Below, in pieces: positions 35,218-61,854 of a stretch of DNA of 64,000 nucleotides (within the stretch, counting starts at the first letter, position 1; each line of letters opens with the position of its first letter). The stretch covers positions 3,410,001-3,474,000 of the forward strand of contig CATNEN010000024.1 of the NCBI GenBank assembly GCA_950097015.1, written 5' to 3'. The notes under the pieces were generated by a model. The model did no database searches, was not told the DNA's origin, and was given only the letters and a program-made list of their open reading frames with translations. Position numbers and translations under genes: made by a program. The DNA is from Macrostomum hystrix (taxonomy: Eukaryota > Animalia > Platyhelminthes).

Positions 35218-38200
35218 TCAGAAGTGCAGAGTGCGCAGATAATTGGCCCACTTATTCAAACTGTCGCCCAGATTGCGCCGGCCCAGGCCTAGCCGTAGAA
35301 AATTATCCGAATAGAGCAGCTCGCGGCCTGACACGGCGAACACTCCGCATTCGGACACCAGGCTGTCGCAGAAGTCGCGACCGGTTGGCCAACGATCCAG
35401 CACTGGCTGGCGCAGCTGGACCAGAGCCAATGAGCCGGCAGCTGGCGCCCGGTAGGCGAACAGGTGGTCGAATTCTTGGAAAAACTTCTCCGCCTTAGCC
35501 GCATTGTCCTTTACAATGGACTCGGCGCGCGCGGCCAGAATTGACAAATTGCGCAGAGCGATAAGCGAAAGAACTTCAACTGGTGGCGCCAGGCAGACAG
35601 ACACGAAGTTGCGCAGATTGCGCACCTGAGAGAATCGTTGGCTTGGTTTTAGTTGCATACAACTGTGCACTGTGAGCAGCCACTGGTCCTCCTGTAACAG
35701 CCACTGGTCCTCCTGTAACAGCTCTTAGTCTTCTTGTAACAGCTCCTGGTCCTCCAGTAATAGCTCCTAGTCTTCTTGTAACAGCCCCTGGTCCTCCAGT
35801 AACAACCCGTGGTCCTCCTGTAACAGCCAATGGTCCTCCTGTAACAGCTCCTGGTCCTCCTGTAACAGCTCCTGGTCCTAGCCCCAGGCCAGGCGCTACC
35901 CCCTGGTCCACCTGTAAACAGGCGCCACCCCCTGGTCCACCTGTAACCCGTGTGGCCATCCGATCAGGTTTTTCGCCCGGTTTTGCTCTGGCTTGCTATG
36001 TTTTTTGCCCCATTTCCAGGCGAAGAACATAAACCAGGCGAATTTATCCGGTTTTTCTCTGCCTTTCTAAACCAGGCGAAATTCCGGAGGAAAAACCGTA
36101 CGAGTGCTCTGGTTTTTTACTCGGTCCTTCGCCAGGTTTGGAACCAGTTTAGTAACGCAGGGAAATCCGGAGTAAAAGCGGATGAAATAACATTTCCGCC
36201 TGGAATTTTGCCCGGTTCTTTCTCTGGTTCTTCGACTGGACAAGAGCCGGAGAAAAGAGCTGATGAAAGCCTTTAATTCAGGATTGGGTTGAAAATGGTA
36301 TGGGAGACAGTGTATAATTGACAATTGACATGAAGATTTTCTTGTAATTGTATGTCCTGTAATGTGCTCCTGTTTTGTTCTCTTGCAGTATTTTTTCCGC
36401 TCATCTTTATATATATCATATGAGCGTCTTCGTATTCGTACGTTACATTACGAGCGTAGTTCACGTAAACTGAGAATAAAAATATTGTCATTTTAATGCT
36501 GTCATCGCACACATTTCTGAAGGCTGCATGCTACTGTGGGATTCCAACGTTGATTTCCTCTTTTACAAAAATGTATAAGCAAAGTCCCATCCCCGAATTG
36601 GCCCGCTAGGCGTAGCGTACGTAGCAGCCTTTGTTAATAAAGTTCCATGAATTTCCAGTGCTAGTAGTTAAGAAACCTGTAAATAATTACAATGGAGCGA
36701 TCACGACGCGACAGACGATTTTATCAGCGGGCGCGACGACTGCAAAAAATATTGACGCGGCCTGCGCTGAGTTGACTGACCGACCGCGTTCCCCGGTTAG
36801 TCGCGCTGTACCTAGTACTTCGCGCAGCAGTAGCACTGTCGTCGCAGCATCGTCGCAGCTTCTCAGAGGTGCCGAGTCCGTAGACACCGGTGACAGTGAG
36901 CCCTCCGAGCATGGTGAGTAGCATCGAGGATCTCCAAAAAGCGGCCCTGATATCCGTTGATACAGAAAAACTATCACGCGTTTCCCACAGACTCCAGTGA
37001 CGGCAGCAGTGGAGGCGACCAAAGCCGCAGTGACGCTGAGTCCGTAAACAGCGCTGGCCGCAATGGCAGCGACGGTACAGAGACACCCGACTCTGAGCCC
37101 TCTGAGCATGGTGAGTAGTATCGACGATCTGCAAAATGCGGCCCCGATATCCGTTGATACAGAAAAACTATCGCGCGTTTCCCACAGACTCCAGTGACGC
37201 TGAGTCACTTGACTCCAGCGACAGCGATGGCCAGGAACAGCCAGTTCTTGATCCCTGGCTACAGCTAGTACCGTGGCACAACGGCGAACCCATCACGGGC
37301 ACCATTGGTGAAGCTGCGTGTCATATTAACGACTGCGTCATTGATCTTGGAATCCCAAGTAAAAAAATAACCAGACTTCTACGTCTTGTGCATTGTCTGG
37401 TTCCGGGAAGTCGAATTCCGCGCACTGCAAGAACTATGTGGCGGACGCTAAAGTCCGCCCAGAGTTACATCGGCTCCGCAAAATGCGTCACTGTGTGCAA
37501 CGAGTGCTACGTAAACTACCGAGGAGACTGCAGTCAAAACGGTGGACATTGCAGTGACTGCGGATCAATGAGAGTCGCAAACTTCTGGGTTTTCAACATT
37601 AGAAAGCAGATCCGAACTTACATAGAGTCATGTGGACTGCTGCATAATTTGACTTTTCCTTCCGACTTCAATCCGCACGAAGACACCATCCATTTCTACA
37701 ATAGTCACCTGTACAGACAGTTTCGGGAGTCGATAAACCTAGTTGCTAAGAGCGACCTCTCGTATACTCTGAGCTCTGATGGGTTTCCAGCACGGTCAAC
37801 CAGCAAGGTAGAGGTGTGTCCAGTCTACTTAAGCATCAACGAGGTTCACGATCATGTCAAGTTGCGCTATGTCATAATCTGTGGGCTCTGGGCTGCTAAG
37901 ACCAAAGTGAGTTCAGCGGCTTTCCTTCCGGTGGTCGTCGACGCGCTGATTTCTTTACGCATCCGGGGCGTAACATACACTGACGCTGATGGAGTTCAGC
38001 GTACGATACGCTTCCATCCGTTGCTAGCAATGTTCGACTCACCGGCTCGTGCAGATGCGCTCCGCATGCGACGATGCACGGCTATCTACGGCTGCGAGAA
38101 GTGCTACATTGCTACGCGTCTTCATCCTTCAGGCTCTGGGCGTGTCTTCGACGTCGGCTTAACGCCAGCAATGCAGAATGCTGCTCGACGTCTAGGTTGT

Positions 38201-41200
38201 CTGCAAACTGTCCTGCGGAGCATGGCAGATACGCGCAGATTAGCGGAGCAACACCTAGCAGGTGCTCGGCACCAGAACACAGACATTGGGTGTCCGAGGC
38301 CACTCTCCGTTAGGACGCCTCCCGGGCTTTGACTTCATGCGCGGATGTCCGCCGTGTTATCTCCACCAGCTGCACCTAGGTCTGGTCCGGATGATAATGT
38401 ACCAATTATTCCTGATGCGGGCCGAGAAGCCGGACCGAGGAGAAACTAATTGTCCGGACCTGCACCGGCTTCAACATCAGGTCGATGAGCCGCTGTTCCG
38501 CATCCGGCTGCCCATCAACGTCCAACGCCATGAAGTGCGTCCACTGAGTGACCTCCGCAATTTCCGTGGGCACGAGTTTGAAATGTGGCTGATGGCCTAC
38601 GGCCCTCTCGTTTTGGAAGCCGTCCTACCACCCGCCCACTACCAGCATCTGTTACTTCTTTCCGCTGCAGTGTTCTGGATGACTGCCGATTATGCGCCTC
38701 TGTCTGAGTTGCGGCACGTAGAGATTGCATTGCGCCACTTCCACGACAAACTGTATAGGTTGTACTCCTTAAGAGCACTAACCTATAATGCTCATCAGGT
38801 GTGCTGCCACATGCTGACATACGTCCGTCTGGCCGGCTCTGCGCACCGCCTATCGGCTGGAATTTTCGAAAGCACGCACTTGCGCCTGCAAAAACGCCTG
38901 CATGGGACGCGGCGCACCGACGTCGAGCTGGTTGGCGCCGTGGAGCGCCACATCGGCACCATCCAAGCGCGAGCGCGACTGATCGGGCACGGGGATCAGC
39001 AAGACGAAGAGGAATTATTCCGTCGAACAGAAGTACTCACCCTTCCAGATGTCGTGCTTCGTCGACCGAAGCGCTGGCAAGTCGGATGGCACAGTGCCAC
39101 TCTGAAATCCGGTTGGACAATACGAATTTTCACTCCCGGATGTCAGGATGCGGCAGGCTTCGTGGCCATCGAAGGTGACACTACGACGGATTTCCGATTC
39201 TGCCGAGTGCAAACCATCGAATGTCAAGGTGAGCAGGTTAGGCTCGGACTTCTCGTACTGCCAGTTCTCGCGGCCGTCGACCCGCTGGAGGAACTAGCAC
39301 AGGTTGCTACAACGTCACCTAATCGAGGCTGTCGACTCGCGCACGTCAGAGTATTCGCATGCGATCCCTTCGGCGACTTGAGCTACCTCGGCGACCCGAT
39401 TCATGTGGGGCTGCCACAGTTTCGTGGCGTCTGTGTCGTCACCGACACAAAAGTAGCTCTGCTGGCCCATCCGCAGTTGGGCTATTCGTAGAGTCTGTTG
39501 GCGTCCGTGGCAATGGGATAACTGATTGACATGCTGGGATAACTGATTGACAGGCTAGGATAACTGATTGCCAGCATAAAACGTATTTTCCTTTCGTCTT
39601 TTCCTAACTTTACGATTGGCAAAACAAAAATCTAATTTCTATTATATTTTTTAACAAACTGTAGTAGTCGTTCTAATTGTTAGCGATTTTGTAAAAATGT
39701 ATATATATGCAGGTAATAGTAGATGCAATTAAACCAAAAAATTGAGTCCGGTTTCCAGAAGCATCTGGATGAGATGCTTTATGAGTCATATGTAGCTTAT
39801 TTACGTGTTACTTCTGTATACTATATTCACTTCATTTTTTGTTGTGTTCATATGCATAAGAATAAGAATATTCTTATAGGTGTCAAAACCCTTTTCAGAC
39901 TGACCCCATTGGATTTAAATCATGTCGGATCGCCCCATAACTTGACTGGCCTAAACTTTTCGAATCAAATGATCGCTGACGGGGATGCCCGTGCCTACGT
40001 CGACTCGGATGACGGCAGCGACACCACAATCGGTGGTCGCTCTCCCGGCCCGCCACCAACGTCGACTCAGGCTGCGTCCCAGTCTCTGCTTACTGCTTCT
40101 ACAGCCTTTACTTGGCCGCTGCATGACGGTCCCAAGGCCAACGTCGACTCGGATGACGGCAGCGACACCACAATCGGTGGTCACTCTCCCTGCCCGCCAC
40201 CAACTTCGACCCGCGCGCGAGCCACTGCCGAGTCCAAGTATACGTGGGAGGACTACAACCGGCTACCACCGGCTGCTCCACCATCATTTGAGTCGAGGCG
40301 TTGGGACGAGCGACGCCTACTACCTGCGCAAACTTGCCCGGACTGCGCCTCATGGTACGCGGAGCTGTCGCCGACTAGCCGAGCACGCCGCTTAGCGCTG
40401 CACGGCCGCCACCGACACAGGCGGATCGTGCAAGCGCCAAACTTCTTCGCGATCGAAAAGCCGCCATCACCACCTCCCGTACCGTTGGATCAATTTAAAG
40501 TGAGGAAGCGGCGTCGAAGGCCGCTTCGGGGTCTGTCACCGAGACCCCGCACTGAATACGAGTGACTATTGCGATTGATGGACTGGAGACTGCCTCAATT
40601 GATGGATTGATGACATTGAGATGATGACGACATTGAGATGATGATGACATTGAGATGATGATGACATTGAGATGATGATGACATTGAGATGATGATGACG
40701 ACATTGAGATGATGACGACATTGAGATGATGACGACATTGAGATGATGATGACATTGAGATGATGGACGTTAGACATGCACGTTTGTATGTATACCAGCA
40801 TATGCTGATAAATACACAAGTCCTTGTTGCCGGCACAATTTGTACGGAATTTTTTATTGAGGAGGAAACCGACAGCCTTAATTGTTACTCTTGAGTCCAG
40901 GCCTAGTTAAAGTAACGTACGAGTACAATTAGATTTCACCCATGTGAACACAGAACACAGTATTGACACAAAAAACTCACATTTTTCAGCTGCTCTAATC
41001 CTAATGGGCACAGGAAAGAAGACTACTGCCGTAGTCGGCAAGTCGAAATCAAATTCCACGTCCACTTCAAAGTCGAAGTCGAAGCCGACCTACAAATCAG
41101 CCGCAACAAAGGCGCCGTCGAGTAAGTCCGGTGGAAAGAAGCGCAAAGCTGTAACTGATGACGATGAGTCATTGAGTCAATTTCTCGGTCGTACTGCCGA

Positions 41201-44200
41201 GAAATCACGTCGACTGCAGGATCCGCTATTGTCAGCCATCGAAGATACTGACACCATGTCTGCTGCACAGACTTCGGGCCCTTCCTCGTCTGCTGTCGCA
41301 GAGGGCACCCAACGGGATGACGTTTTCATACAGCATGACATGGTGCCCTACAAACGTGAAGCGGTACCGCGATTCTTTATTTTTAAGTACTCCAACTATT
41401 TCGAAAAAACAGAAGTTGTCAGCACGCGCGATGACATTGTTGGACGCAAACGCGAGTCCCCGAGTAACGTCGATGTCGGCAGCGAAGTCTTAATTGTCGT
41501 CGCTAAGGCGAACAGGACGGCCGCGAAAAAATGGCTCGGGACACTAGTACGTGGGCCGTTCGCTTCCAGAAGCATCGCGACCGGCACAGCGGTCCTAGGA
41601 AACGTACACGCTCAGCCATCGGAACTTCCACGTGCCTGTGCATCCTGCCGGACGTTTGCTACAGAGAACGAGCGACAGTCGTCGCTTATAGACACCCTGC
41701 GTGAGTGCCATCAATTGTTGGTCGTTACTTCTGCACTTTCAGGTCGGGTATAGTGCCTTTTTTGTTTGAACCACCGCATACTTTTTTAGGGAGCCAGTTA
41801 CAGCACAGCACAGTTAAAGAAACGAATCAGCGAGAAAGCGTCCGACTATTAACGGAGCAGCTTCGTGTCGCGAATCGTATGGAGCGAACGCTTTTACGCC
41901 AACTGGAGGACGAGCAGCATCGTAACGTGCTGCTGGTCAGCAGCATGCAGCAGTGCAACTCGCTGCTTATTCAGGGGTCAGAGCTGCTTTCCCAGAATGC
42001 CCGCGAAGTCTCTCAGCCGGCCCGCTTGAGTACAAAAGCTGCATCTGACACCAATGACACCGATGGCGGTGATGACGGCGACGCCAGCGATTCCAGGCAG
42101 GACGCCATGTCCATCACTGTAACGCAGAGCTTGTCCGCAGCGCAGACGCGCGCTCTGAAAGATGCCTGCGACGCCGCCACGCCGAACGTTGACCTAACAG
42201 CTGCTTCTCTTGTGCCATTCTCTGAGCAGCAGGGCTTCGTTAAGGTAGCTTTGAATAAGCGGCACGATGCGGAAGATCGGCTAGAAGCCTACAAAAAAGT
42301 GCCAGCCAAACAGGATGGCGAGGACGCAAAACTTACTGCACTCCGAAAGTCTGTGACGCTGGCAGTTCTCCGAGCTGCCCTGCGTGCCGTCTTCACGGAC
42401 AGGGAGTTCGCCTGCTGCACACTGTCCGGGCGCAAGGCGCCCGGTCAGGCCACATCTTCACCCGCAAACCCGGGAAAATTGGCTGCAGTACGTGTGTGGC
42501 TCGCGAACGCCGGGGTGCAGTGCACTGCGGACAGTCTAAGTCAGGCGTTCACGCAATGCACTGCGACTGCGCGGCAGAGACTGGAACTCCCAACGCGCTC
42601 CGCCCCTCCCCCCCAGCGGAAGCAGCCGAAACCGCCAAAGCCGAAGGCCACAACAGTCGTCATTATAGACTCCGCTGACTCTGCTCAGAGCCGCGAAGTC
42701 TGTCAGCCAACCCTCTCGAATACAACAGCTGCATCTGACGCCAATGACGCCGATGACGGCGATGACGCCGGAGATGCCAGAGAGGTCGAAATGCGGCATC
42801 TGGAGGGGGACGACGATCATAGCGCCATGGACGGCACAGTCAGCTGCGGCGACTTTCTGAACATACTTTTGGCCAGTCAGAAGTGATTTTGAATTCCCGC
42901 ATTTATGCGCCTAGTGACTAGCGACTATGCGCCTACTGACTGTATTCTACAAAATCTTTTGAATAAAAAAACAGAGGAGTATATTGATCTTGTAGGTGAT
43001 TTGGAACAGTTTGATGAATTGCAAGATGGAACGTTACATAGTTTGTATTAACACTAACTGACAATTGTCTTACTTCTTTACTCTTCACGGTATCAGTTGA
43101 CAGAAGCGCACTGTAGATGTTTTACTAAGTCGGCACTACATATTTCCGAGAGTAGACACAATTCGATAGGGATGCAGGGTTTTTCGTCCGGTTTGATCGT
43201 CGTGTCGCTTTTGTTAGGTTTTAGTCTGATTTTGCTCCGGATATTCGTCCGGTTTGATCGTCGTGTCGCTTTCGTTAGGTTTTAGTCTGATTTTGCTCCG
43301 GATATTCGTCCGGTTGGGTCGTCGTGTCGCTTTCGTTAGGTTTTAGTCTGATTTTGCTCCGGATATTCGTCCGGTTTGATCGTCGTGTCGCTTTCGTTAG
43401 GTTTTAGTCTGATTTTGCTCCGGATATTCGTCCGGTTGGGTCGTCGTGTCGCTTTCGTTAGGTTTTAATCTGATTTTGCTCCGGATATTCATCTGGTTTG
43501 ATCGTCGTGTCGCTTTCGTTAGGTTTTAGTCTGATTTTGCTCCGGATATTCGTCCGGTTTGATCGTCGTGTCGCTTTCGTTAGGTTTTAGTCTGATTTTG
43601 CTCCGGATATTCGTCCGGTTGGGTCGTCGTGTCGCTTTCGTTAGGTTTTAGTCTGATTTTGCTCCGGATATTCATCTGGTTTGATCGTCGTGTCGCTTTC
43701 GTTAGGTTTTAGTCTGATTTTGCTCCGGATATTCGTCCGGTTTGATCGTCGTGTCGCTTTCGTTAGGTTTTAGTCTGATTTTGCTCCGGATATTCGTCCG
43801 GTTTGATCGTCGTGTCGCTTTCGTTAGGTTTTAGTCTGATTTTGCTCCGGATATTCGTCCGGTTGGGTCGTCGTGTCGCTTTCGTTAGGTTTTAGTCTGA
43901 TTTTGCCCCGGTTATTTGCCGGGTTCTGCTATTGCACTTTCATCCGGTCATTTGTCGGGTTTTATTTAGGGTACTCATCAGTTTGAGTAGCCGAAGAGAA
44001 ACCCGAGAAAATACCTGATGTCCTCTACGAAATTCCTGACGTTTTCGAGACCACTTTCCCGAGGATTTTCGGGTTTTTAGATAGGAAAAAATGTATTACA
44101 AACCGGGCAAAAATCCCGATCGCCTACCGGGCGAAAAACCTGATCAGATGGCCACATGGGAAACAGGCGCTACCCCCTGATCCACCTGTAAACAGGCGCT

Positions 44201-45026
44201 CGCTTACGCCGGCCAAGATGCGGGCGTCCCTGGTCACCAGCCAGCCGAAGCGCAGGCCGGGCAGGCCGTAGCACTTGGACAGGCCGTTGAGGGTGACCGC
44301 AGACTCGTACAGCTGGCAGGCCGGCACTATTCTGGCCGGCCCGATGCCCGAGTAGATCTCGTCCGACACCAGCAGCAATTGGCGCTCTCTGCAGAGCTGG
44401 ATAAGGGCCAGCCACTGTTCCGGCGTGGGACAATAACCAGTGGGATTGTGCGGAAAGTTGGTCACAAGCAGTCTAATACCCGGCCGTTCATCCAACAAGT
44501 TTCGCAGACGGTCCAGGCAGAAGCGCCAGTCGCAATGCGTCGAACTTGGCGGCTCCGCCTCCCAGCGGTGCACGTTGGCACCGCACGCCCTCAGAGTCTC
44601 GTGCAGGCCCTGAAAGGCGGGCCAGGTGACGGCCGCTTCCGGTCGTTCGTCCGGTTTTTCGTTGCGCAACAGATCGCAAATCACTGTGGCCACAGAGAAC
44701 AGGGCTTCCTGTGGGCCCATCAGTGCCAGCTCCGAGTCAGCCTGACGGCCTGGATAGAGCTGGCTAATGAGTTCGGCTGCCAGGCGCGGATCGCCCTCCG
44801 GACCGCCGTAGCCAAGGCGAACCTCACCCCAGAGGCGCAGACACTCGGCATCGGCCATAGACAGCAATTCGGCCTGGCTAAGCGACTCGCAGTCGGAGCT
44901 GGACACACTGGTGAGGTCTGTGCGGAACTGGAATTGGTTCATGCGATTGGCTAACAGCAGAGCTGAATGGCCATGAAGCTGCTGGCTACAAAGGCCACCG
45001 CTGCTGCTGCTGTCAGGTTGGGAGGC
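35218..45026 (-). CDS. PLP-dependent class I/II aminotransferase of bacterial-like type; exons ~45026-44208 and 35625-35218, separated by an 8.6-kb intron holding the CACTA element; start exon not located
   Basis: SSSDCES, LGYG..EGDP.L, NFPHNPTG, DEIY, GLSKCYGLPGLRFGW (PLP lysine) and LRLGLGR. The donor GGC|GTAAGC and acceptor CTCAG|GTG are both phase 0, giving ...RILAG-VRNLRNFVSVC. Confidence 0.88.
35677..35946. repeat. 21-bp and 29-bp tandem repeats; the 29-bp unit is the CACTA target site
   Basis: ctcctggtcctcctgtaacag units, then aggcgctaccccctggtccacctgtaaac, which resumes at 44163-44200. Confidence 0.85.
36692..39491 (+). CDS. EnSpm/CACTA (Tnp2/TnpD-like) transposase; inferred exons 36692-36913, 36991-37110, 37188-39491, with two frameshifts
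   Basis: Zn ribbon CNEC...CSDC; SSDG (D1); FDSPARA...GCEKC (D2 region); GVRGHSPLGRLPGFDF; C-Y-L-H (C/D(2)H motif); IFES (E). Frameshifts at the A6 run 36744-36749 and at ~38260-38290. Confidence 0.85.
39969..40565 (+). CDS. Transposon-borne protein with a CtIP/Sae2 C-terminal-like domain (~198 aa from the Met at 39969)
   Basis: ERRLLPAQTCPDCASWYAELSPTSRARRLALHGRHRHRRI aligns ungapped to recalled human CtIP [40 protein letters not shown] (17/40 identical), followed by APNFF (CtIP TPENFW). A probable upstream intron lies at 39713-39879. Confidence 0.75.
   Translation: MIADGDARAYVDSDDGSDTTIGGRSPGPPPTSTQAASQSLLTASTAFTWPLHDGPKANVDSDDGSDTTIGGHSPCPPPTSTRARATAESKYTWEDYNRLPPAAPPSFESRRWDERRLLPAQTCPDCASWYAELSPTSRARRLALHGRHRHRRIVQAPNFFAIEKPPSPPPVPLDQFKVRKRRRRPLRGLSPRPRTEYE
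40610..40765. repeat. Short tandem array (gacattgagatgatgat-type) between transposon ORFs
   Basis: About 9 copies of a 17-20-bp unit. Confidence 0.9.
41004..42886 (+). CDS. Transposon accessory protein with coiled coil and C-terminal BEN-like domain; exons 41004-41742, 41790-42886 (~611 aa)
   Basis: A 47-nt GT-AG phase-1 intron joins the two ORFs. K/S-rich N-terminus. LRAALRAVFTDREFACCTLSGRK...NPGKLAAVRVWL...SQAFTQCTATARQRL fits the BEN helical pattern. Confidence 0.7.
43185..43915. repeat. 61-bp subterminal tandem array of the CACTA element, ~12 copies
   Basis: Repeated gattttgctccggatattcgtccggtttgatcgtcgtgtcgctttcgttaggttttagtct. Confidence 0.93.
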
Positions 45027-52015: not shown

Positions 52016-53553
52016 TCTCAGCCTATGGGCATTCAAACTCAGCCAGCCCATCTTGTCACTGCGGTTTTTTTACCTAAGCTGCTAATTTTTACCATAGACA
52101 TGCATTTTAAGACCATGCTATCTCAGCTTGGGACGAGCAATCTCAGCCAACATATAAGTTCTATGATATTCTGTCTATAGTTTTGTTAACATTTTTTAAA
52201 CAGTCTATTTACAAGAGAAAAACAGGGTAACGCTCGTATGGGATGGGATATATAGAGCAAACTTTGAAAATGGCTACCAGAGACGATCAGTTAACAGGCT
52301 ATTTCAGTTTAGTTGAAAGGTACCTCCTGGATGCATTGTGGGAAGATCCGGTTGCAGGAATTTCCCACCTGGCTATCTTCATTGGCGTCACAACTTGCAG
52401 AGTCTCGGCCCACTCGCTCCAGCAGAAAAATGCGCCATTCCACGCAGGTGACTACATCAGGTCGTCCACCAGCTTCTTCCTCCACCAGTGCGGGATCAGC
52501 GAGCTGCAGCTTGATCGAAGCCTTCACTGCACTATGAGCCATCTCACACGGGTTGAGAAACGGCGAGTAAGCGGGCAGCAGCTGAGTTTCAAACTGATGG
52601 CGGTGCTGCTCCGGCACTGTCACACCGCGATGAAAGCTTGGACCATCGCAGACTATGACGACTCTGGCGTTGCCGATTTACGGGATGACTTGCTCCACGA
52701 GGTCATTGATGAATTGTTGAAACCTCTCCTTTGTCTGGCCTCCTCTGAATAACTCACTCTTCACCAACCCAAGTGCAGATGACACGGCCAGACAGATGGA
52801 AAGATTTGGACCCCTCTGTGTTGGGCAACGCCGTCTCACTGGCTGACCCCGTCGCGACCTTCGCTGTGATCTGCGCGTCCAGAGGTTGTACCCCGTCTCG
52901 TCTATATAGATTACCACCGTATCCAGTTGCAATCCCGCCATGAGTAGCGCATACTCGCGTCGCTTCTCTATCACCGCGGGAGAGTTCGCGCTCAATCGAA
53001 TGTCGCAGTTCTTAGTGGCAATCTTAAATGTATATATAGGGCTCCATCCAGAGCTCTGACTATTGTCTTAATGGAGACCGGTGGCTTGTCTGGAAGCTGA
53101 GCAGCGAGATTAGTCTGCAATGCTTTCAGTGTCGCCATCGGATTTTCATTTAAGAGGCCGATGAGCACTTGGCGCATCTCGTCGTCCAACTTGCAAGAGC
53201 CAATCTTCCGGCCTCCGCGCTGAAGAGCATCAATCCGACCTGTAGCTTTAAAAGTGGCAATGATGTTGCGAGCGGTTTTCAATTTGATGCCAAGAATTGT
53301 AGCGGCTAGACCAATATTCTGTCCTTCCGTCCACGCGGAGATCAAGCGTCTTCAATCAACGTTGCTGGTTGCCCTCATTTTGGCGGAACAGCTTCAAATG
53401 TTAACAAAACTATAGACAGAATAACATAGAACTTATATGTTGGCTGAGATTGCTCGTCCCAAGCTGAGATAGCATGGTCTTAAAATGCATGTCTATGGTA
53501 AAAATTAGCAGCTTCAGTAAAAAAACCGCAGTGACAAGATGGGCTGGCTGAGA
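52016..53553 (-). mobile_element. IS630/Tc1-superfamily element with ~157-bp TIRs and a degenerate transposase
   Basis: 52038-52194 is the inverted repeat of 53397-53552. HTH N-terminus, YIDETGYNLW, IVCDGPSFH, LPAYSPFLNPCE. Two in-frame stops and one frameshift; TA at the probable ends. Confidence 0.88.
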
Positions 53554-54206: not shown

Positions 54207-56900
54207 ATGGTGATGGACATCGGGTTATTCGGCACGCTGCGCAAACTGAAACTCACCAGTTCCAGCCTCCGGGTGGATGACGATTTTACCGATCGATTAA
54301 ATCACCACTACACTGGCATTTTATTGCTGCTGTTTACCTTCATCATATCTGCCAAGCAGTACGTCGGTAAGGAGGATGATGGCTCTCCGGAAAGATGGTG
54401 TCTCACCTGTGAGATGGTGTCTCACCTGTGAGATGGTGTCTCACCTGTGAGATGGTGTCTCACCTGTGAGATGGTGTCCCACCTGTGCGATGGTGTCTCA
54501 CCTGTGCGATGGTGTCTCACCTGTGAGATGGTGTCTCACCTGTGCGATGGTGTCTCACCTGTGAGATGGTGTCTCACCTGTGAGATGGTGTCTCACCTGT
54601 GAGATGGTGGGTAATGTAAAAAGGCTGCCCTAGTTTGGATGGAAAATATAATTATTGGCTTTAACACGAAGGCTTGACAACCTTTTTGTACATTACGATG
54701 CGTCTAAATATCTCTCATGTTCCAGGCCAGCCCCTGCAATGCTGGGTGCCAGCCACCTACACGAAAGCCATGGAGCAATACGCCGAGAACTACTGCTGGG
54801 TGCAGAACACTTACTATGTGGCGTTCGACAGCAGCGTGCCGAAGGAGCAGTCGGAGAGGAGAAACCGGAAAATAGGCTATTATCAATGGGTGCCATTTGT
54901 GCTAGCCTGCCAGGCACTATTATTCCACCTGCCCTGCATCCTGTGGCGACTGCTCAACTGGCAAACTGGCGTGAATTTTCGCGCCCTCAGCCAACTAGCC
55001 TGGGAGGCGCAGGGTCTGGCCCAAGCTGACGCTCGCGGCCGCGCCATTCGTGGCATGGCTAGTCACGTGCGTGATTCTGTAGGCCTGTGCAGCGCCGGAG
55101 CCCCAATAAGGTGTGAAAATGGCCATGAAATTTCATTGATTCCAAAGGCATTTGCATTTTTTAATCACTCAGTTCTCGTTTTAATCTTGAAATATTGAAA
55201 TATCAGTATCATACCTGTAAGATTGTAGCTCAACTGCGAGATTATAGCTCATGTGTGAGATGGTAGCTCACCTGTGAGATGGTAGCTCACCTGTGAGATG
55301 GTAGCTCACCTGTGAGATGGTAGCTCACCTGTGAGATGGTAGCTCACCTGTGAGATGGTAGCTCACCTGTGAGATGGTAGCTCACCTGTGAGATGGTAGC
55401 TCACCTGTGAGATGGTAGCTCACCTGTGATATGGTAGCTCAGCGGTAAGATGTTGTCTCACCTGTGAGATGGTAGCTCACCGGTAAGATGTTGTCTCACC
55501 TGTGAGATAATAGCTCACCTAGTAGATGGTAGCTCACCTGTGAGGTGGTAGCTCACCTGTCAGATGGTAGCTCACATATGATATGGTAGCTCACCTATGA
55601 GATGGTAGCTCACCTATGATATTGTAGCTCACCTGTGTGATGGTATCTCACCTGTGTGATGGTAGCTCACCTGTGTGATGGTAGCTCACCTGTGTGATGG
55701 TAGCTCACCTGTGTGATGGTAGCTCACCTGTGTGATGGTAGCTCACCTGTGTGATGGTAGCTCACCTGTGTGATGGTAGCTCACCTGTGTGATGGTAGCT
55801 CACCTGTGTGATGGTAGCTCACCTGTGTGATGGTATCTCACCTGTGTGATGGTAGCTCACCTGTGTGATGGTAGCTCACCTGTGTGATGGTAGCTCACCT
55901 GTGTGATGGTAGCTCACCTATGAGATGGTAGCTCACCTGTGTGATGGTAGCTCACCTATGAGATGGTAGCTCACCTATGAGATGGTAGCTCACCTGTGTG
56001 ATGGTAGCTCACCTGTGTGATGGTAGCTCACCTATGAGATGGTAGCTCACCTATGAGATGGTAGCTCACCTGTGAGATGATAGCTCGCCTTCAAGATGAT
56101 TAGTTATTCTCAGAATCATAGGTGTGATCATATATTTTATGATCAGTTCTCAAATATGCTCTATTTTAATCCGTTCTGTGTACAGATCCGGCTGCTTCAG
56201 AAGGATCCGGTTCTGTCTAAGCCAGACCCTGTGCTTTCCTTGTTCCAATAATCACGGCCGGTACCTCACCTACTTGTACTTGATCATCAAGCTACTTTAC
56301 CTGGCCAACTGTGTGTGCCAGTTTTTTCTACTCAACGCTTTCCTCGGCATGAGGCCTGGGGAATTGTTTGGCCTAGAACTGCTGGCCAGCATGATGTCCG
56401 GCCGAAGTTGGGAGGAGTCTGGCCGGTTTCCCAGGGTTACGCTGTGCGACTTCTGGGTGCGCACCATTGCTGACAACCACCGACACTCTGTGCAGTGTGT
56501 GTTGGTGATCAACATCTTCAACGAGAAGATTTTCGCCTTCCTCTGGTTCTGGTTCGTGCTAGTCGCCAGCCTGTCCGCCCTGTCGCTGATTTCCTGGTCA
56601 ATTCGCCAGCTGGCACCTGTCAGTCGATACAGATTTGTCGCCGACTTCATTCGCCTCGCTGATAACGTTGGCGGCGGTGGCGGCGGTGGCGGCGGTCCTC
56701 GACGCGGTGAAGCTCGGCTTGTTCGCCAGTTCGTCGATGACGTTCTCCGCTGCGACGGAGTCTTCGTGCTGCGCATGGTGGCAGCCAACGCTGGCGATGT
56801 CATTACAGCAAGTGTGGTCAAAGAGCTCTGGACTGCGTTCAAGAAGTGGCACTGTAACCATGTATTTGATCCAATTGCTAATTCCTCCGATATAGTCTGA
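54207..56900 (+). CDS. Innexin, 3 exons (54207-54366, 54726-55110, 56186-56900)
   Basis: DDDFTDRLNHHYT, KQYVGQPLQCW, YAENYCWVQNTY, YYQWVPFVL, FPRVTLCDF, QCVLVINIFNEKIFAFLWFW; introns phase-compatible. Confidence 0.96.
54393..54608. repeat. 19-bp minisatellite, innexin intron 1
   Basis: Repeated gagatggtgtctcacctgt. Confidence 0.93.
55250..56085. repeat. 19-bp minisatellite, innexin intron 2
   Basis: Repeated gagatggtagctcacctgt / gtgatggtagctcacctgt. Confidence 0.95.
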
Positions 56901-59405: not shown

Positions 59406-61854
59406 ATTGCTGGAATTAGTGGCCCCACATATGAGGAGTTCTTCAAAGAGGTAAGTGTAATGAAGGCCAAATAGTTTTTCTATGCCTATTGATTTTAGGA
59501 CTTAAACTTTTTAGCTTAAATTCACACTGCCACGCAGCTCAGCACGGATGGCAGTGGCTACATCTCGGCTCAGGCTGCAGCCGCATTTCTAAAACGCTCC
59601 GGCCTGTCCGACTCGCTGCTGTCGAAGATCTGGGAGGTGGCCGACTTTGAGAAGCGCGGCTTACTCGATAAGCAAGGCTTCTTCATTGCATTGAAGCTGA
59701 TCGCCTTAGTCCAGGCTGGCAAGGAGCCGCTGGTTGGCAACCTCACAGTGCCAGTGTCGCCACCGGCCATCAAGCCGGCCACTCCGCAGCCAGCACCGGC
59801 TGTTTCAGCGGTCGATCATGCCGCCTCTCCTGAAGCCGGCATTGTTTCAGCATCGCCGGCCAAGTTAGCGCCGTCTACAGCTGCGGCTTCTGCATCATCG
59901 TCAGTGTCCGCTGGCGGTTCAGTCGGCATCAACGATCAGCTGATTCAACAGGCCGATGCCGCCTTTCTGAACCTCGGTCCGGAGGCCGGCGATCGATTGC
60001 CCGGCGCCAAGGTGAAGCCCTACCTGCTGCAGTCTGGCCTGCCCACCGCCACCCTAGTGTCAATCTGGGACGCCAGCGACGAGGATCGGGACGGCTGCCT
60101 GACTCGCCAGGAATTTCGCAAAGCTTTCGCCTTGGTGCGGCAGGCTCTCGGGCGAGCGTTGGCGGCTAGAACGGCCGTCCATGTCATGGCCGAGGTGAGC
60201 TGGCTCTGTGACTGTTTCTTCACCGATTGTGGTCTCAATCTGGTGGCAGCTGATTCCTAGCCTAGTGGATAGAGCGTCGGATTTACGATCTGAGGGTCGG
60301 GGGTTCGATTCCCGACTCTACAGGATCAATTCTGTACATCTGGCCTAATTAGATCGTAACCAATCCTCTAGGCCATAGACTACGCCTACAGTCTATGCCC
60401 AGGCACACCCCAGTTTGATTTGTGTTTATGAGCAAATGCAATAGGCAGAATCGCCAGTGCTGACACAGAGCTCCTACAAATATAAGAAGATAATGATATT
60501 ATTCCGACAGGTTGACACGGACAACGATGGCATTGTCTCTGGCCAAGATGTTCGCCAGCTGTTCCTACAGACGGGCCTCGAGCCTGCAGTCCTGGCCCGC
60601 ATCTGGGACCAGGCGGACACTGGCCGCACGGGAAGGCTAACAGCCGAGCAGTTCGCCTTCGCCTGGCGCATGGTCCAGGCCGAGATGGCATCCGCCGATT
60701 CAGCCGGATTAGCGACTGTGGCGGCTGCGTCAGTCGCGGCTTCGGTTATGCCGTCGGTGCCGCAGCTGTCAGATGGCATTCTGGCAGAGGCCAGCCGGGT
60801 CCAACAGCGACGCCAACAGGCCGAGGCCGCCTGCGCCCAGCTTGAAGCCGACCTGCGCGCTCGGCGGGCCGAGCTGCAGCTGCAGCAGCGGGAGGCGGAG
60901 CACCTGGCCTCGGCCTGCGTGCAGCTGGAGCAGCAGAAGCGCGAAGCTCAACGCCGTGTCGAAGAGGTTGAAGAGCGGGAGCGGAAACTGGCCGGCAGCG
61001 TGGACGAATGCGAGCAGCGCCGCGCCGAGGAGGCCGCCCAATTGGAGGGCCTGAAGGCGCGCCTAGCCCAGGACCAGGCCGGGGTCCGCGGCGCCGCCCA
61101 GGAGACCGAGCGACTGCGCCGCGAGCTGACCTCCCTGACCCAGGAGGAGGCCCGGCTTGCCGACTCGGCCCAGGGTGCCAGGAGCCGACTGGCGGGTCTG
61201 GAGCGCGAGCTGGAGGCCGAGAACCACCGCCTGGAGCAGGAGGCGTCCGCGCTGGCGGCTCTGCAGGAGCAGCTGGCTGCGCTAGAAGCTGGCCGTCTGG
61301 CGCCAGACGATGTTGACACCTCAGCTAGTGCCGCCATTCCGGCTGTTGCTAATAACGCGAAAGATCTGTTCTCGGTTGGCGCCGATGATCCCTTCAGCGG
61401 CGGCGACGATCCATTCCAGGAATCGTCTGTAGGCGGCGGTGGCGCCGTTGGTAGCGTCGATTTTTTCTCCGACGATCCGTTCGCTGTCAAGCAACAGCAG
61501 CAGCCGGTGGCCTCATCCGGCCAGAGCGGTCCGTTTCGCTTCGACGCGGCTTTCGGCGGCCCGGCCGACTTTGCTGACGCATTCGGCGGCGGCGCAGCAG
61601 CGGCGGCTCCCCCGCCCTACAGTAGCGCCGATCCGTTCGGCGGCAGCGGCGGTGGCGGCTGGGGCTTCTCCGGAAGCAGCGATTTCGGCGATCCGTTTGC
61701 ACCGAAGGCGGCCCCGCCATTGCTAAACGAGCAGGAGCAGGTGGCCTGGGCAACGGCTGAGAGCGAGCGGGTGGCCAAGCATCAGATGAGCCTGCGGCAG
61801 CGCGAGGAAGAGGAAGTTCAGCGCGCTCTGCGGCTCAGCTTGCACGAGCAATGA
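59406..61854 (+). CDS. EPS15: Eps15/Eps15L1-like endocytic adaptor; exons 59406-59450, 59538-60194, ~60460/60511-61854; start codon uncertain
   Basis: Three EH domains (LSKIWEVAD, LVSIWDASD, LARIWDQAD), coiled coil, several DPF motifs, and C-terminal UIMs (EQVAWATAESER, EEEEVQRALRLSL). Confidence 0.92.
60258..60320 (+). mobile_element. Isolated tRNA-Arg-like head of SINE family A in an Eps15 intron
   Basis: gcctagtggatagagcgtcggat...ggttcgattccc has A and B boxes and matches the family A head; no complete acceptor stem. Confidence 0.65.

Follow-up and report, generated by a model that had tools for sequence, protein, structure and literature searches.

A CMC-like DNA transposon of Macrostomum hystrix carries a predicted gene for a CtIP/Sae2-type C-terminal domain

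Background

Host-derived genes are carried by several kinds of DNA transposon, among them the ULP1-like protease genes of plant CACTA and Mutator elements, the RPA70-like genes of Helitrons and the transduplicates of Pack-type elements. Here we describe a gene of this kind from the flatworm Macrostomum hystrix, found in a 64,000-nucleotide stretch of contig CATNEN010000024.1 (positions 3,410,001 to 3,474,000 of the forward strand; below, the window, numbered from its first letter), where a CMC-like transposon contains a short gene related to the C-terminal domain of the DNA end-resection factor CtIP/Sae2. As in the known cases, an apparently host-derived coding piece lies between the element ends and is propagated with the element; unlike those cargoes it corresponds to a DNA-break processing cofactor, and unlike the Pack-type fragments it sits in an element of autonomous type and is far diverged from its parent gene. 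While host genes are already known as transposon cargo, a break-resection cofactor in this role was not found reported in a literature search over about 8.4 million texts for CtIP-like cargo with transposons (CACTA, EnSpm), in agreement with the initial annotation of the window, whose author knew of no description of such cargo in CMC transposons.

CtIP residues 792-869 have been modelled on MRE11-RAD50, with the CxxC...RHR stretch, a conserved 'C-rich-H' block, near the Mre11 fastener helix and with T847 in contact with RAD50 R79 (bioRxiv 10.1101/2023.08.05.552090). According to the same source, S. pombe Ctp1 has a hydrophobic residue at the phospho-site and works without cyclin-dependent kinase (CDK), and a 15-residue peptide from the C-terminus of Ctp1 suffices for Mre11 stimulation. 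Like this peptide, the predicted product of the transposon gene is short, C-terminal and basic at its RRxP-type end, and like Ctp1, which acts on Mre11-Rad50 without CDK, it has a non-phosphorylatable residue at the S267/T847 position; the Ctp1 peptide was made in the laboratory from a host protein, whereas here a natural gene, known from sequence, encodes the tail alone. Short modules aimed at the RAD50 surface that Sae2/CtIP uses, and exerting local control of MRN (MRE11-RAD50-NBS1), are also found in yeast Rif2 (the MIN motif) and human TRF2 (the iDDR motif), which bind RAD50 and switch MRN off (PMC11260466); they are unrelated in sequence to the transposon product, host-encoded, telomeric and inhibitory.

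Cut-and-paste transposons depend on host break repair. The hairpins left by excision of the hAT elements Ac/Ds need host nucleases, and in yeast without Mre11 or Sae2 zero revertants were recovered (PMC3299998). A transposon-borne end of an MRN cofactor would be a natural experiment in the manipulation of repair pathways, and a mini-CtIP, reduced by nature, would also reveal which parts of CtIP suffice. Transgenesis exists for M. lignano (PMC5730564), making the idea testable. Should the gene prove to be a passenger, it would still illustrate clearly how an exon captured by a DNA transposon of an animal can persist for a long time.

Results and Discussion

Homology to the CtIP/Sae2 C-terminal domain

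On the + strand of the window lies an open reading frame (ORF) of 280 aa (39723-40565), the C-terminal 91 residues of which are encoded by the stretch 40290-40565, where the initial annotation had recognised a CtIP/Sae2-like domain; the peptide quoted there, from ERRLLPAQTCPDCASWY to a basic SP tail, is contained in it. The ORF is intact and, as that annotation held, lies within an element bounded by terminal inverted repeats (35 nt, 94% complementary), on the same strand as its neighbours, the transposase ORFs and the ORFs 40911-41750 and 41705-42883. When the 108-aa tail was compared by phmmer with 1.84 billion representative proteins, only four reached E<=0.001, and three of the four are of CtIP type. 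The first of these, P0002, is M. lignano PAA54340.1 (E 7e-21; 101 residues aligned at 56% identity), which has a longer sister, PAA88737.1, in the same cluster. The other two are a 315-aa metagenomic protein (P0003; E 2.5e-9) that combines a coiled coil at the N-terminus with a Pfam SAE2 match (E 5e-9), and a C-terminal fragment of frog CtIP (P0005; E 8.7e-4; Pfam SAE2 E 2e-13). The fourth match, to a zinc-ribbon repeat protein, aligns only over the CxxC stretch and was discounted as a relative. Because E values of 7e-21 and 2.5e-9 were obtained over a collection of this size, chance resemblance can be excluded.

The position-by-position agreement with CtIP noted in the initial annotation is borne out by a BLASTP comparison with the frog fragment (pairwise E 1e-10; 20 identities in 44 ungapped positions), in which the spacing from CPDC over 20 residues to RHR is identical to that of frog CtIP. 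A five-sequence alignment (A1) contains the invariant columns R, R..L, CxxC, RHR, F, P and RRxP, the last of these being a basic motif near the C-terminus in which R181, R182 and P185 are invariant. In the ESM Atlas the tail is placed beside short SAE2-domain clusters (0.91, 204 shared features), and SAE2 is carried by the 28 best-scoring named clusters near it. Searches of PDB sequences, started either from the ORF or from a profile of the alignment, gave no relative and no solved structure of the domain, and a metagenome scan with the CtIP-domain alignment gave no match. Judged by sequence comparison, the last ~110 residues of the ORF are genuinely homologous to the CtIP/Sae2 C-terminal domain.

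Extent and predicted structure of the gene

The likely start of the CtIP-tail gene is the ATG at 39969, since the 1-nt indels found in other copies of the element all lie upstream of it (39881, 39941, 39963/39965). No indel is listed inside 39969-40565 among contigs of four public sequencing runs (three RNA-labelled runs from three studies and one of unknown kind, compared over 37000-42900); the 90 nt upstream of the ATG hold three 1-nt indels and the 594 nt of the gene none. The 82 codons that precede this ATG in the 280-aa ORF are probably non-coding, and their translation is the hydrophobic string of an AT-rich sequence, unlike protein. Within the gene a 48-codon in-frame duplication doubles an acidic DSDDGSDTTIGG..PPPTST module upstream of the CtIP domain, whereas M. 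lignano host CtIP has one related acidic module, DDEGSETLKIA.

An AlphaFold2 model of the product is mostly disordered (mean predicted local distance difference test score, pLDDT, 58.6; predicted template modelling score, pTM, 0.22). Only short helices around the CxxC block reach pLDDT 80-91, as expected for the CtIP family; the first predicted helix begins no earlier than residue 93, and most of the stretch 1-86 stays below pLDDT 50. By both the alignment and the model, the N-terminal tetramerising coiled coil is absent from the transposon product, as the initial annotation had stated.

Origin of the cargo and age of the capture

In M. lignano the gene of PAA54340.1 lies on a 56-kb contig, in three exons, between acetyl-CoA synthetase and EMP24/GP25L genes, and PAA88737.1 has an N-terminal coiled coil. 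The tail of the M. lignano protein passes the curated gathering score of Pfam SAE2 (PF08573; 19.8 bits) with 22.9 bits, only when scanned alone. By sequence and gene context PAA54340.1/PAA88737.1 is the ordinary host CtIP of M. lignano. The transposon gene is 54-56% identical to it over the last ~107 residues, with the same order of motifs (KYT.DYN, ERR, CxxC, RHR, VQAPNFFAIE, PP[ST]P, RRxP), the same stop position and the same alanine replacing the CDK threonine. It differs in being without the N-terminal coiled coil and long middle region, in a VVR block that is 4 residues shorter, in having 2 fewer residues after RHR, and in being intronless, inside a transposon, multi-copy and saturated with differences at synonymous sites. 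The homology starts ~15 codons into the last exon of M. lignano CtIP and ends at the same stop position; capture of the last exon of a host CtIP gene would be the simplest origin of the CtIP-tail gene.

At the position of human T847-P the transposon product reads A-P-N-F-F, so that the phospho-acceptor is gone and the aromatics are kept. The Ala-Pro and the surrounding VQAPNFFAIE are common to M. lignano CtIP and the transposon copy and are absent from P0003 and the frog protein, which places the capture within the macrostomid lineage. The change from T-P to A-P, as first described, is present, and the suggestion attached to it, that the transposon product in particular was uncoupled from CDK control, was rejected: M. 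lignano CtIP has the identical Ala-Pro, and the missing CDK site was inherited and is not an innovation of the transposon.

A side observation concerns the host protein. M. lignano CtIP (P0002, P0006; locus L001, 10001-13072) has Ala-Pro at human T847-Pro, recalling S. pombe Ctp1, and by this analogy suggests CDK-independent activation of MRN by the host CtIP itself.

Over 109 aligned codons, the transposon gene and the last exon of M. lignano CtIP have 53% nucleotide identity, with proportions of differing synonymous (pS) and non-synonymous (pN) sites of 0.81 and 0.36. Since a pS of 0.81 exceeds the random expectation of 0.75, synonymous sites are saturated, and this divergence rules out that the present host gene was passively captured in recent times, the possibility that the initial annotation had set against functional cargo. 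The gene also does not look like a Pack-type transduplicate, in that it is not close to its parent gene at the nucleotide level and the element has transposase frames. In relative-rate counts rooted on P0003, 14 changes were specific to the transposon copy and 9 to host CtIP; with the frog fragment as outgroup each had 11. These counts indicate no acceleration of the transposon copy, which also retains ancestral residues that have been lost from host CtIP.

Copies and derivatives of the element

The ORF is not confined to the copy in the window, a point on which the first reading had made its interpretation depend. Contigs ~98% identical to the window over the whole 5.9 kb compared are present in all four runs, and M. 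lignano has a decayed copy. The indels listed within open frames all have lengths divisible by three (+9, -3, +3, +3, +6, -3), except for a 2-bp deletion private to the window copy, while 1-nt indels between copies sit in spacer. Each of the four runs also contains a contig that joins 36545 (36516-36545 identical) directly to 42860, that is, a 6.3-kb internal-deletion derivative without any of the genes, with AAC microhomology at both sides of the junction. Such derivatives are typically left by microhomology joining or by gap repair that was aborted. A subterminal array and internally deleted derivatives are both present, as in CMC transposons.

The decayed copy is found in a UniProt model of M. 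lignano (P0001, 284 aa) that starts with a frameshifted copy of the CtIP-tail ORF fused to an RNA_pol_L_2 domain; the fusion probably arose in annotation, from a copy of the element lying within or beside a host gene. The frameshift indicates that decayed copies exist elsewhere in the genome. In this copy the acidic-module unit is arranged differently, so the number of repeats varies between copies. Exact-product look-ups with the window ORFs and the decayed copy gave no other locus.

Proposed function and alternative explanations

The motifs that contact MRN are kept in the product, and hairpinned flanks of the kind studied in Ac/Ds need Mre11 and Sae2; we therefore propose that the 198-codon mini-CtIP of this CMC-like transposon is a stand-alone MRN-binding module that changes the processing of transposase-made breaks, a reading to which we give a probability of roughly 55%. 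Under this proposal the gene would be carried as a regular second gene of the element, descended from the last exon of host CtIP. Its predicted product retains the three CtIP elements that published modelling and assays link to MRE11-RAD50, namely the CxxC...RHR block, the loop for the outer sheet of RAD50 (A-P-N-F-F) and the basic RRxP end, and has lost the coiled coil. It would bind MRN at the element's own excision site and locally stimulate clipping and resection. Blocked or hairpinned flanks would then be opened or trimmed, and repair would be steered to a homology-directed or microhomology route. By analogy with the Ctp1 peptide, the protein is more likely an activator of MRN than a blocker. 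A more ambitious version, which we regard as doubtful, is that the element encodes a pathway-choice factor, a CDK-independent mini-CtIP that recruits or activates MRN at the excision breaks, so that the flanks are opened and resected, the gap is refilled from the sister copy and copy number rises, with the microhomology-bounded deletions arising in the same process. The deletion junction fits resection-dependent repair and proves nothing.

Several observations weigh against a function at transposase-made breaks. CtIP without its tetramerisation domain is reported to be defective in cells, and to our knowledge hairpinned flanks have not been biochemically established for CMC transposases. The tail (40290-40562) scores 12.0 bits (E 0.45) against Pfam SAE2, below the cut-off, and a Pfam scan of the whole 280-aa ORF gave no match; of the profile check suggested at the outset, the family score thus failed, and the homology to SAE2 members was recovered by phmmer. 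Neither phmmer nor the metagenome scan found relatives of the cargo outside Macrostomum. The old divergence could have accrued before capture, in a host CtIP lineage such as a paralogue since lost or the CtIP of another, donor species. The differences between copies suggest selection during the transposon phase and do not demonstrate it: compared with the common contig, the window copy has 3 synonymous and 2 non-synonymous listed differences in the CtIP-tail gene, and 15 synonymous against 19 non-synonymous over all frames of the element, which is more synonymous change than the neutral expectation and, for the CtIP-tail gene alone, far too few differences.

The public runs add a further point on the same side. 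In the RNA-labelled runs depth is roughly even and unspliced over coding and non-coding parts of the element, and it tracks that of the run of unknown kind, including a peak over the internal duplication. In a control with the non-coding left end (35950-36650), RNA-labelled runs contain 0.46-0.63 of its words, against 0.10-0.48 for the ORF, and some of them contain the left end and not the ORF. Presence in RNA-labelled runs was therefore rejected as evidence of expression, and the RNA check that had been proposed for the gene did not support its expression, the non-coding ends being equally present. Real transcription is indicated only by one contig of an RNA-labelled run (X2) that passes from 37110 directly into the exon downstream of the 77-nt intron, with a 16-letter overhang; it concerns the transposase gene, not the CtIP-tail gene.

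The strongest competitor, which we consider possible and clearly less probable than an MRN-binding module, is that the last exon of CtIP was captured once and has since been a neutral passenger, its ORF open only because the copies are young (~98% alike) and of no benefit to the element. In keeping with this, the 3 synonymous and 2 non-synonymous differences between copies are too few to show constraint, decayed copies exist, the coverage of the RNA-labelled runs gives no sign of a CtIP-tail mRNA, the cargo was found only in Macrostomum, and other long ORFs overlap the same GC-rich stretch, so that openness of the frame is weak evidence. A passenger would nevertheless not be expected to retain every functional motif and the stop position while its synonymous sites became saturated, nor to show no acceleration of rate relative to the host gene and zero indels in 594 nt against three 1-nt indels in the 90 nt upstream; it would also require as donor a CtIP gene that is unseen and had already diverged.

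If the module does bind MRN, it might act in the opposite direction. A tail that binds RAD50/MRE11 without the bridging N-terminus could inhibit resection, locally or globally, and thereby favour end joining of the donor site or shield the excised ends. The absence of the tetramerising coiled coil would suit such a blocker, as would the yeast MIN and TRF2 iDDR motifs, which bind the same RAD50 surface and switch MRN off (PMC11260466). Against this, the C-terminal Ctp1 peptide alone activates Mre11, and a general block of resection should carry a cost for a host that regenerates and is rich in stem cells, so we think a blocker unlikely.

It is much less probable still that an alternative transcript of the transposase gene includes the ORF as a 3' exon, which would fuse the CtIP tail to the transposase. 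Maize En/Spm makes two proteins from one transcript, the ORFs 38259-39488, 39723-40562 and 40911-41750 are in one common reading frame, and the transposase gene has short GT..AG introns, for which there is one spliced contig. However, no joint between transposase and ORF occurs in any of the four runs; the only nearby skip (39640->39886, in one run) has AT..CA ends and is not a splice, and the spacer 39500-39960 is variable between copies, with loose ends at 39508 and 39795. Finally, the idea that the ORF is not cargo at all, being a host CtIP exon or pseudogene between chance inverted repeats or a chance resemblance, draws on the sub-threshold Pfam SAE2 score and was rejected as almost certainly wrong, since chance is excluded by the phmmer E values (7e-21 and 2.5e-9 for a library of 1.84e9 proteins), the inverted-repeat pair interrupts a minisatellite unit precisely, host CtIP lies elsewhere in an ordinary gene neighbourhood, and the same ORF recurs with its neighbours in the ~98% identical contigs of four runs and also at another locus in M. 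lignano.

Organisation of the element and its surroundings

The inverted-repeat pair bounds an element of 8,214 bp (Table 1). It had been called a CACTA element; its termini are CCCGTGTGG and CCCATGTGG, not CACTA, and that name was dropped. The element interrupts a 29-bp minisatellite unit within CTGTAAACAGG; the unit has three A and the flanks together have five, and from the two extra A a 2-bp target duplication is deduced, which agrees with the 2-3 bp duplications of CMC transposons.

Table 1. Features of the transposon, in window coordinates
Feature	Position	Strand	Description
Target-site duplication AA	left 35945..35946, right 44161-44162	.	inferred from interrupted minisatellite unit
Left terminal inverted repeat	35947..35981	+	35 nt, 94% complementary to 44126-44160; starts CCCGTGTGGCC, not CACTA
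Intron, 77-nt GT..AG	37111..37187	+	5' part of transposase gene; a second copy, with the exon, at 36892-37002
Transposase N-terminal part, open frame	37115..38329	+	DGF...CPV and D.PA...C..C motifs
Transposase C-terminal part, other frame	38259..39488	+	split near 38282
CtIP-tail gene	39969..40565	+	198 codons + stop; likely true extent of ORF 39723-40565
In-frame internal duplication	39993..40210	+	two 74-nt copies (39993-40066, 40137-40210), 95% identical, 144 nt apart
CtIP/Sae2 C-terminal homology region	40236..40562	+	KYTWEDYN, ERR..L, CxxC, 20 residues, RHR, A-P-N-F-F loop, RRRRP tail
17-bp minisatellite	40608..40765	.	9 copies; directly 3' of CtIP-tail stop codon
Third open frame	40911..41750	+	no Pfam family at threshold
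BEN-like gene	41705..42886	+	Pfam BEN sub-threshold: E 0.072, 13.7 vs 23.2 bits
Right subterminal array	43183..43916	.	61 bp x 12
Right terminal inverted repeat	44126..44160	+	partner of 35947-35981

The transposase is encoded in two overlapping frames, and its translation contains DGF...CPV and D.PA...C..C motifs, which we take to be those of CMC transposases. In the ESM Atlas its first half is placed beside Transposase_21 clusters (0.95, 193-202 shared features), with RAG1 and Plavaka further off. A Pfam scan of both halves gave no match even at E<=10, a metagenome scan with the transposase gave none, and word-index protein searches returned a decayed copy as their only match and no transposase homologue, although such index searches missed even host CtIP and their blanks say little. 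For the ORF at the right of the element the nearest Atlas clusters are BEN proteins (0.87, 186 shared features), and the BEN assignment is no more than a lead. The position given to the CtIP-tail gene at first, between transposase and BEN genes, is supported, with the qualification that neither neighbour reaches the threshold of its Pfam family (Transposase_21 and BEN) and that the match to Transposase_21 comes from Atlas features only. Taking these sequence features together, we classify the element as a CMC-like cut-and-paste DNA transposon and assign it to no subgroup.

Contigs of all four runs have two extra bases after 38282, so the window copy carries a private 2-bp deletion in its transposase and is probably not autonomous. 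The deletion being absent from these contigs, intact-frame copies of the transposase exist elsewhere. In the 5' part of the transposase gene a 197-nt tandem duplication (36892-37002, 37089-37199) holds the end of an exon and the 77-nt intron; most of the copies in the runs have one unit. The minisatellite that follows the CtIP-tail stop codon has threefold higher depth in the run of unknown kind, which indicates that this repeat is frequent elsewhere in the genome too.

Around the element, an aminotransferase class I/II exon (44210-44834, - strand; Pfam E 8e-26) lies ~50 bp from the right end and ends at position 239/361 of the profile. Further to the right, 157-nt inverted repeats at 52038-52194 and 53396-53552 (98% complementary, 1.2 kb apart) look like a young foldback or small terminal-inverted-repeat element. 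Host-type exons for an innexin (56124-56897; Pfam E 9e-53) and an EH/EF-hand domain (60457-61851) are also present, and both fit an invertebrate genome.

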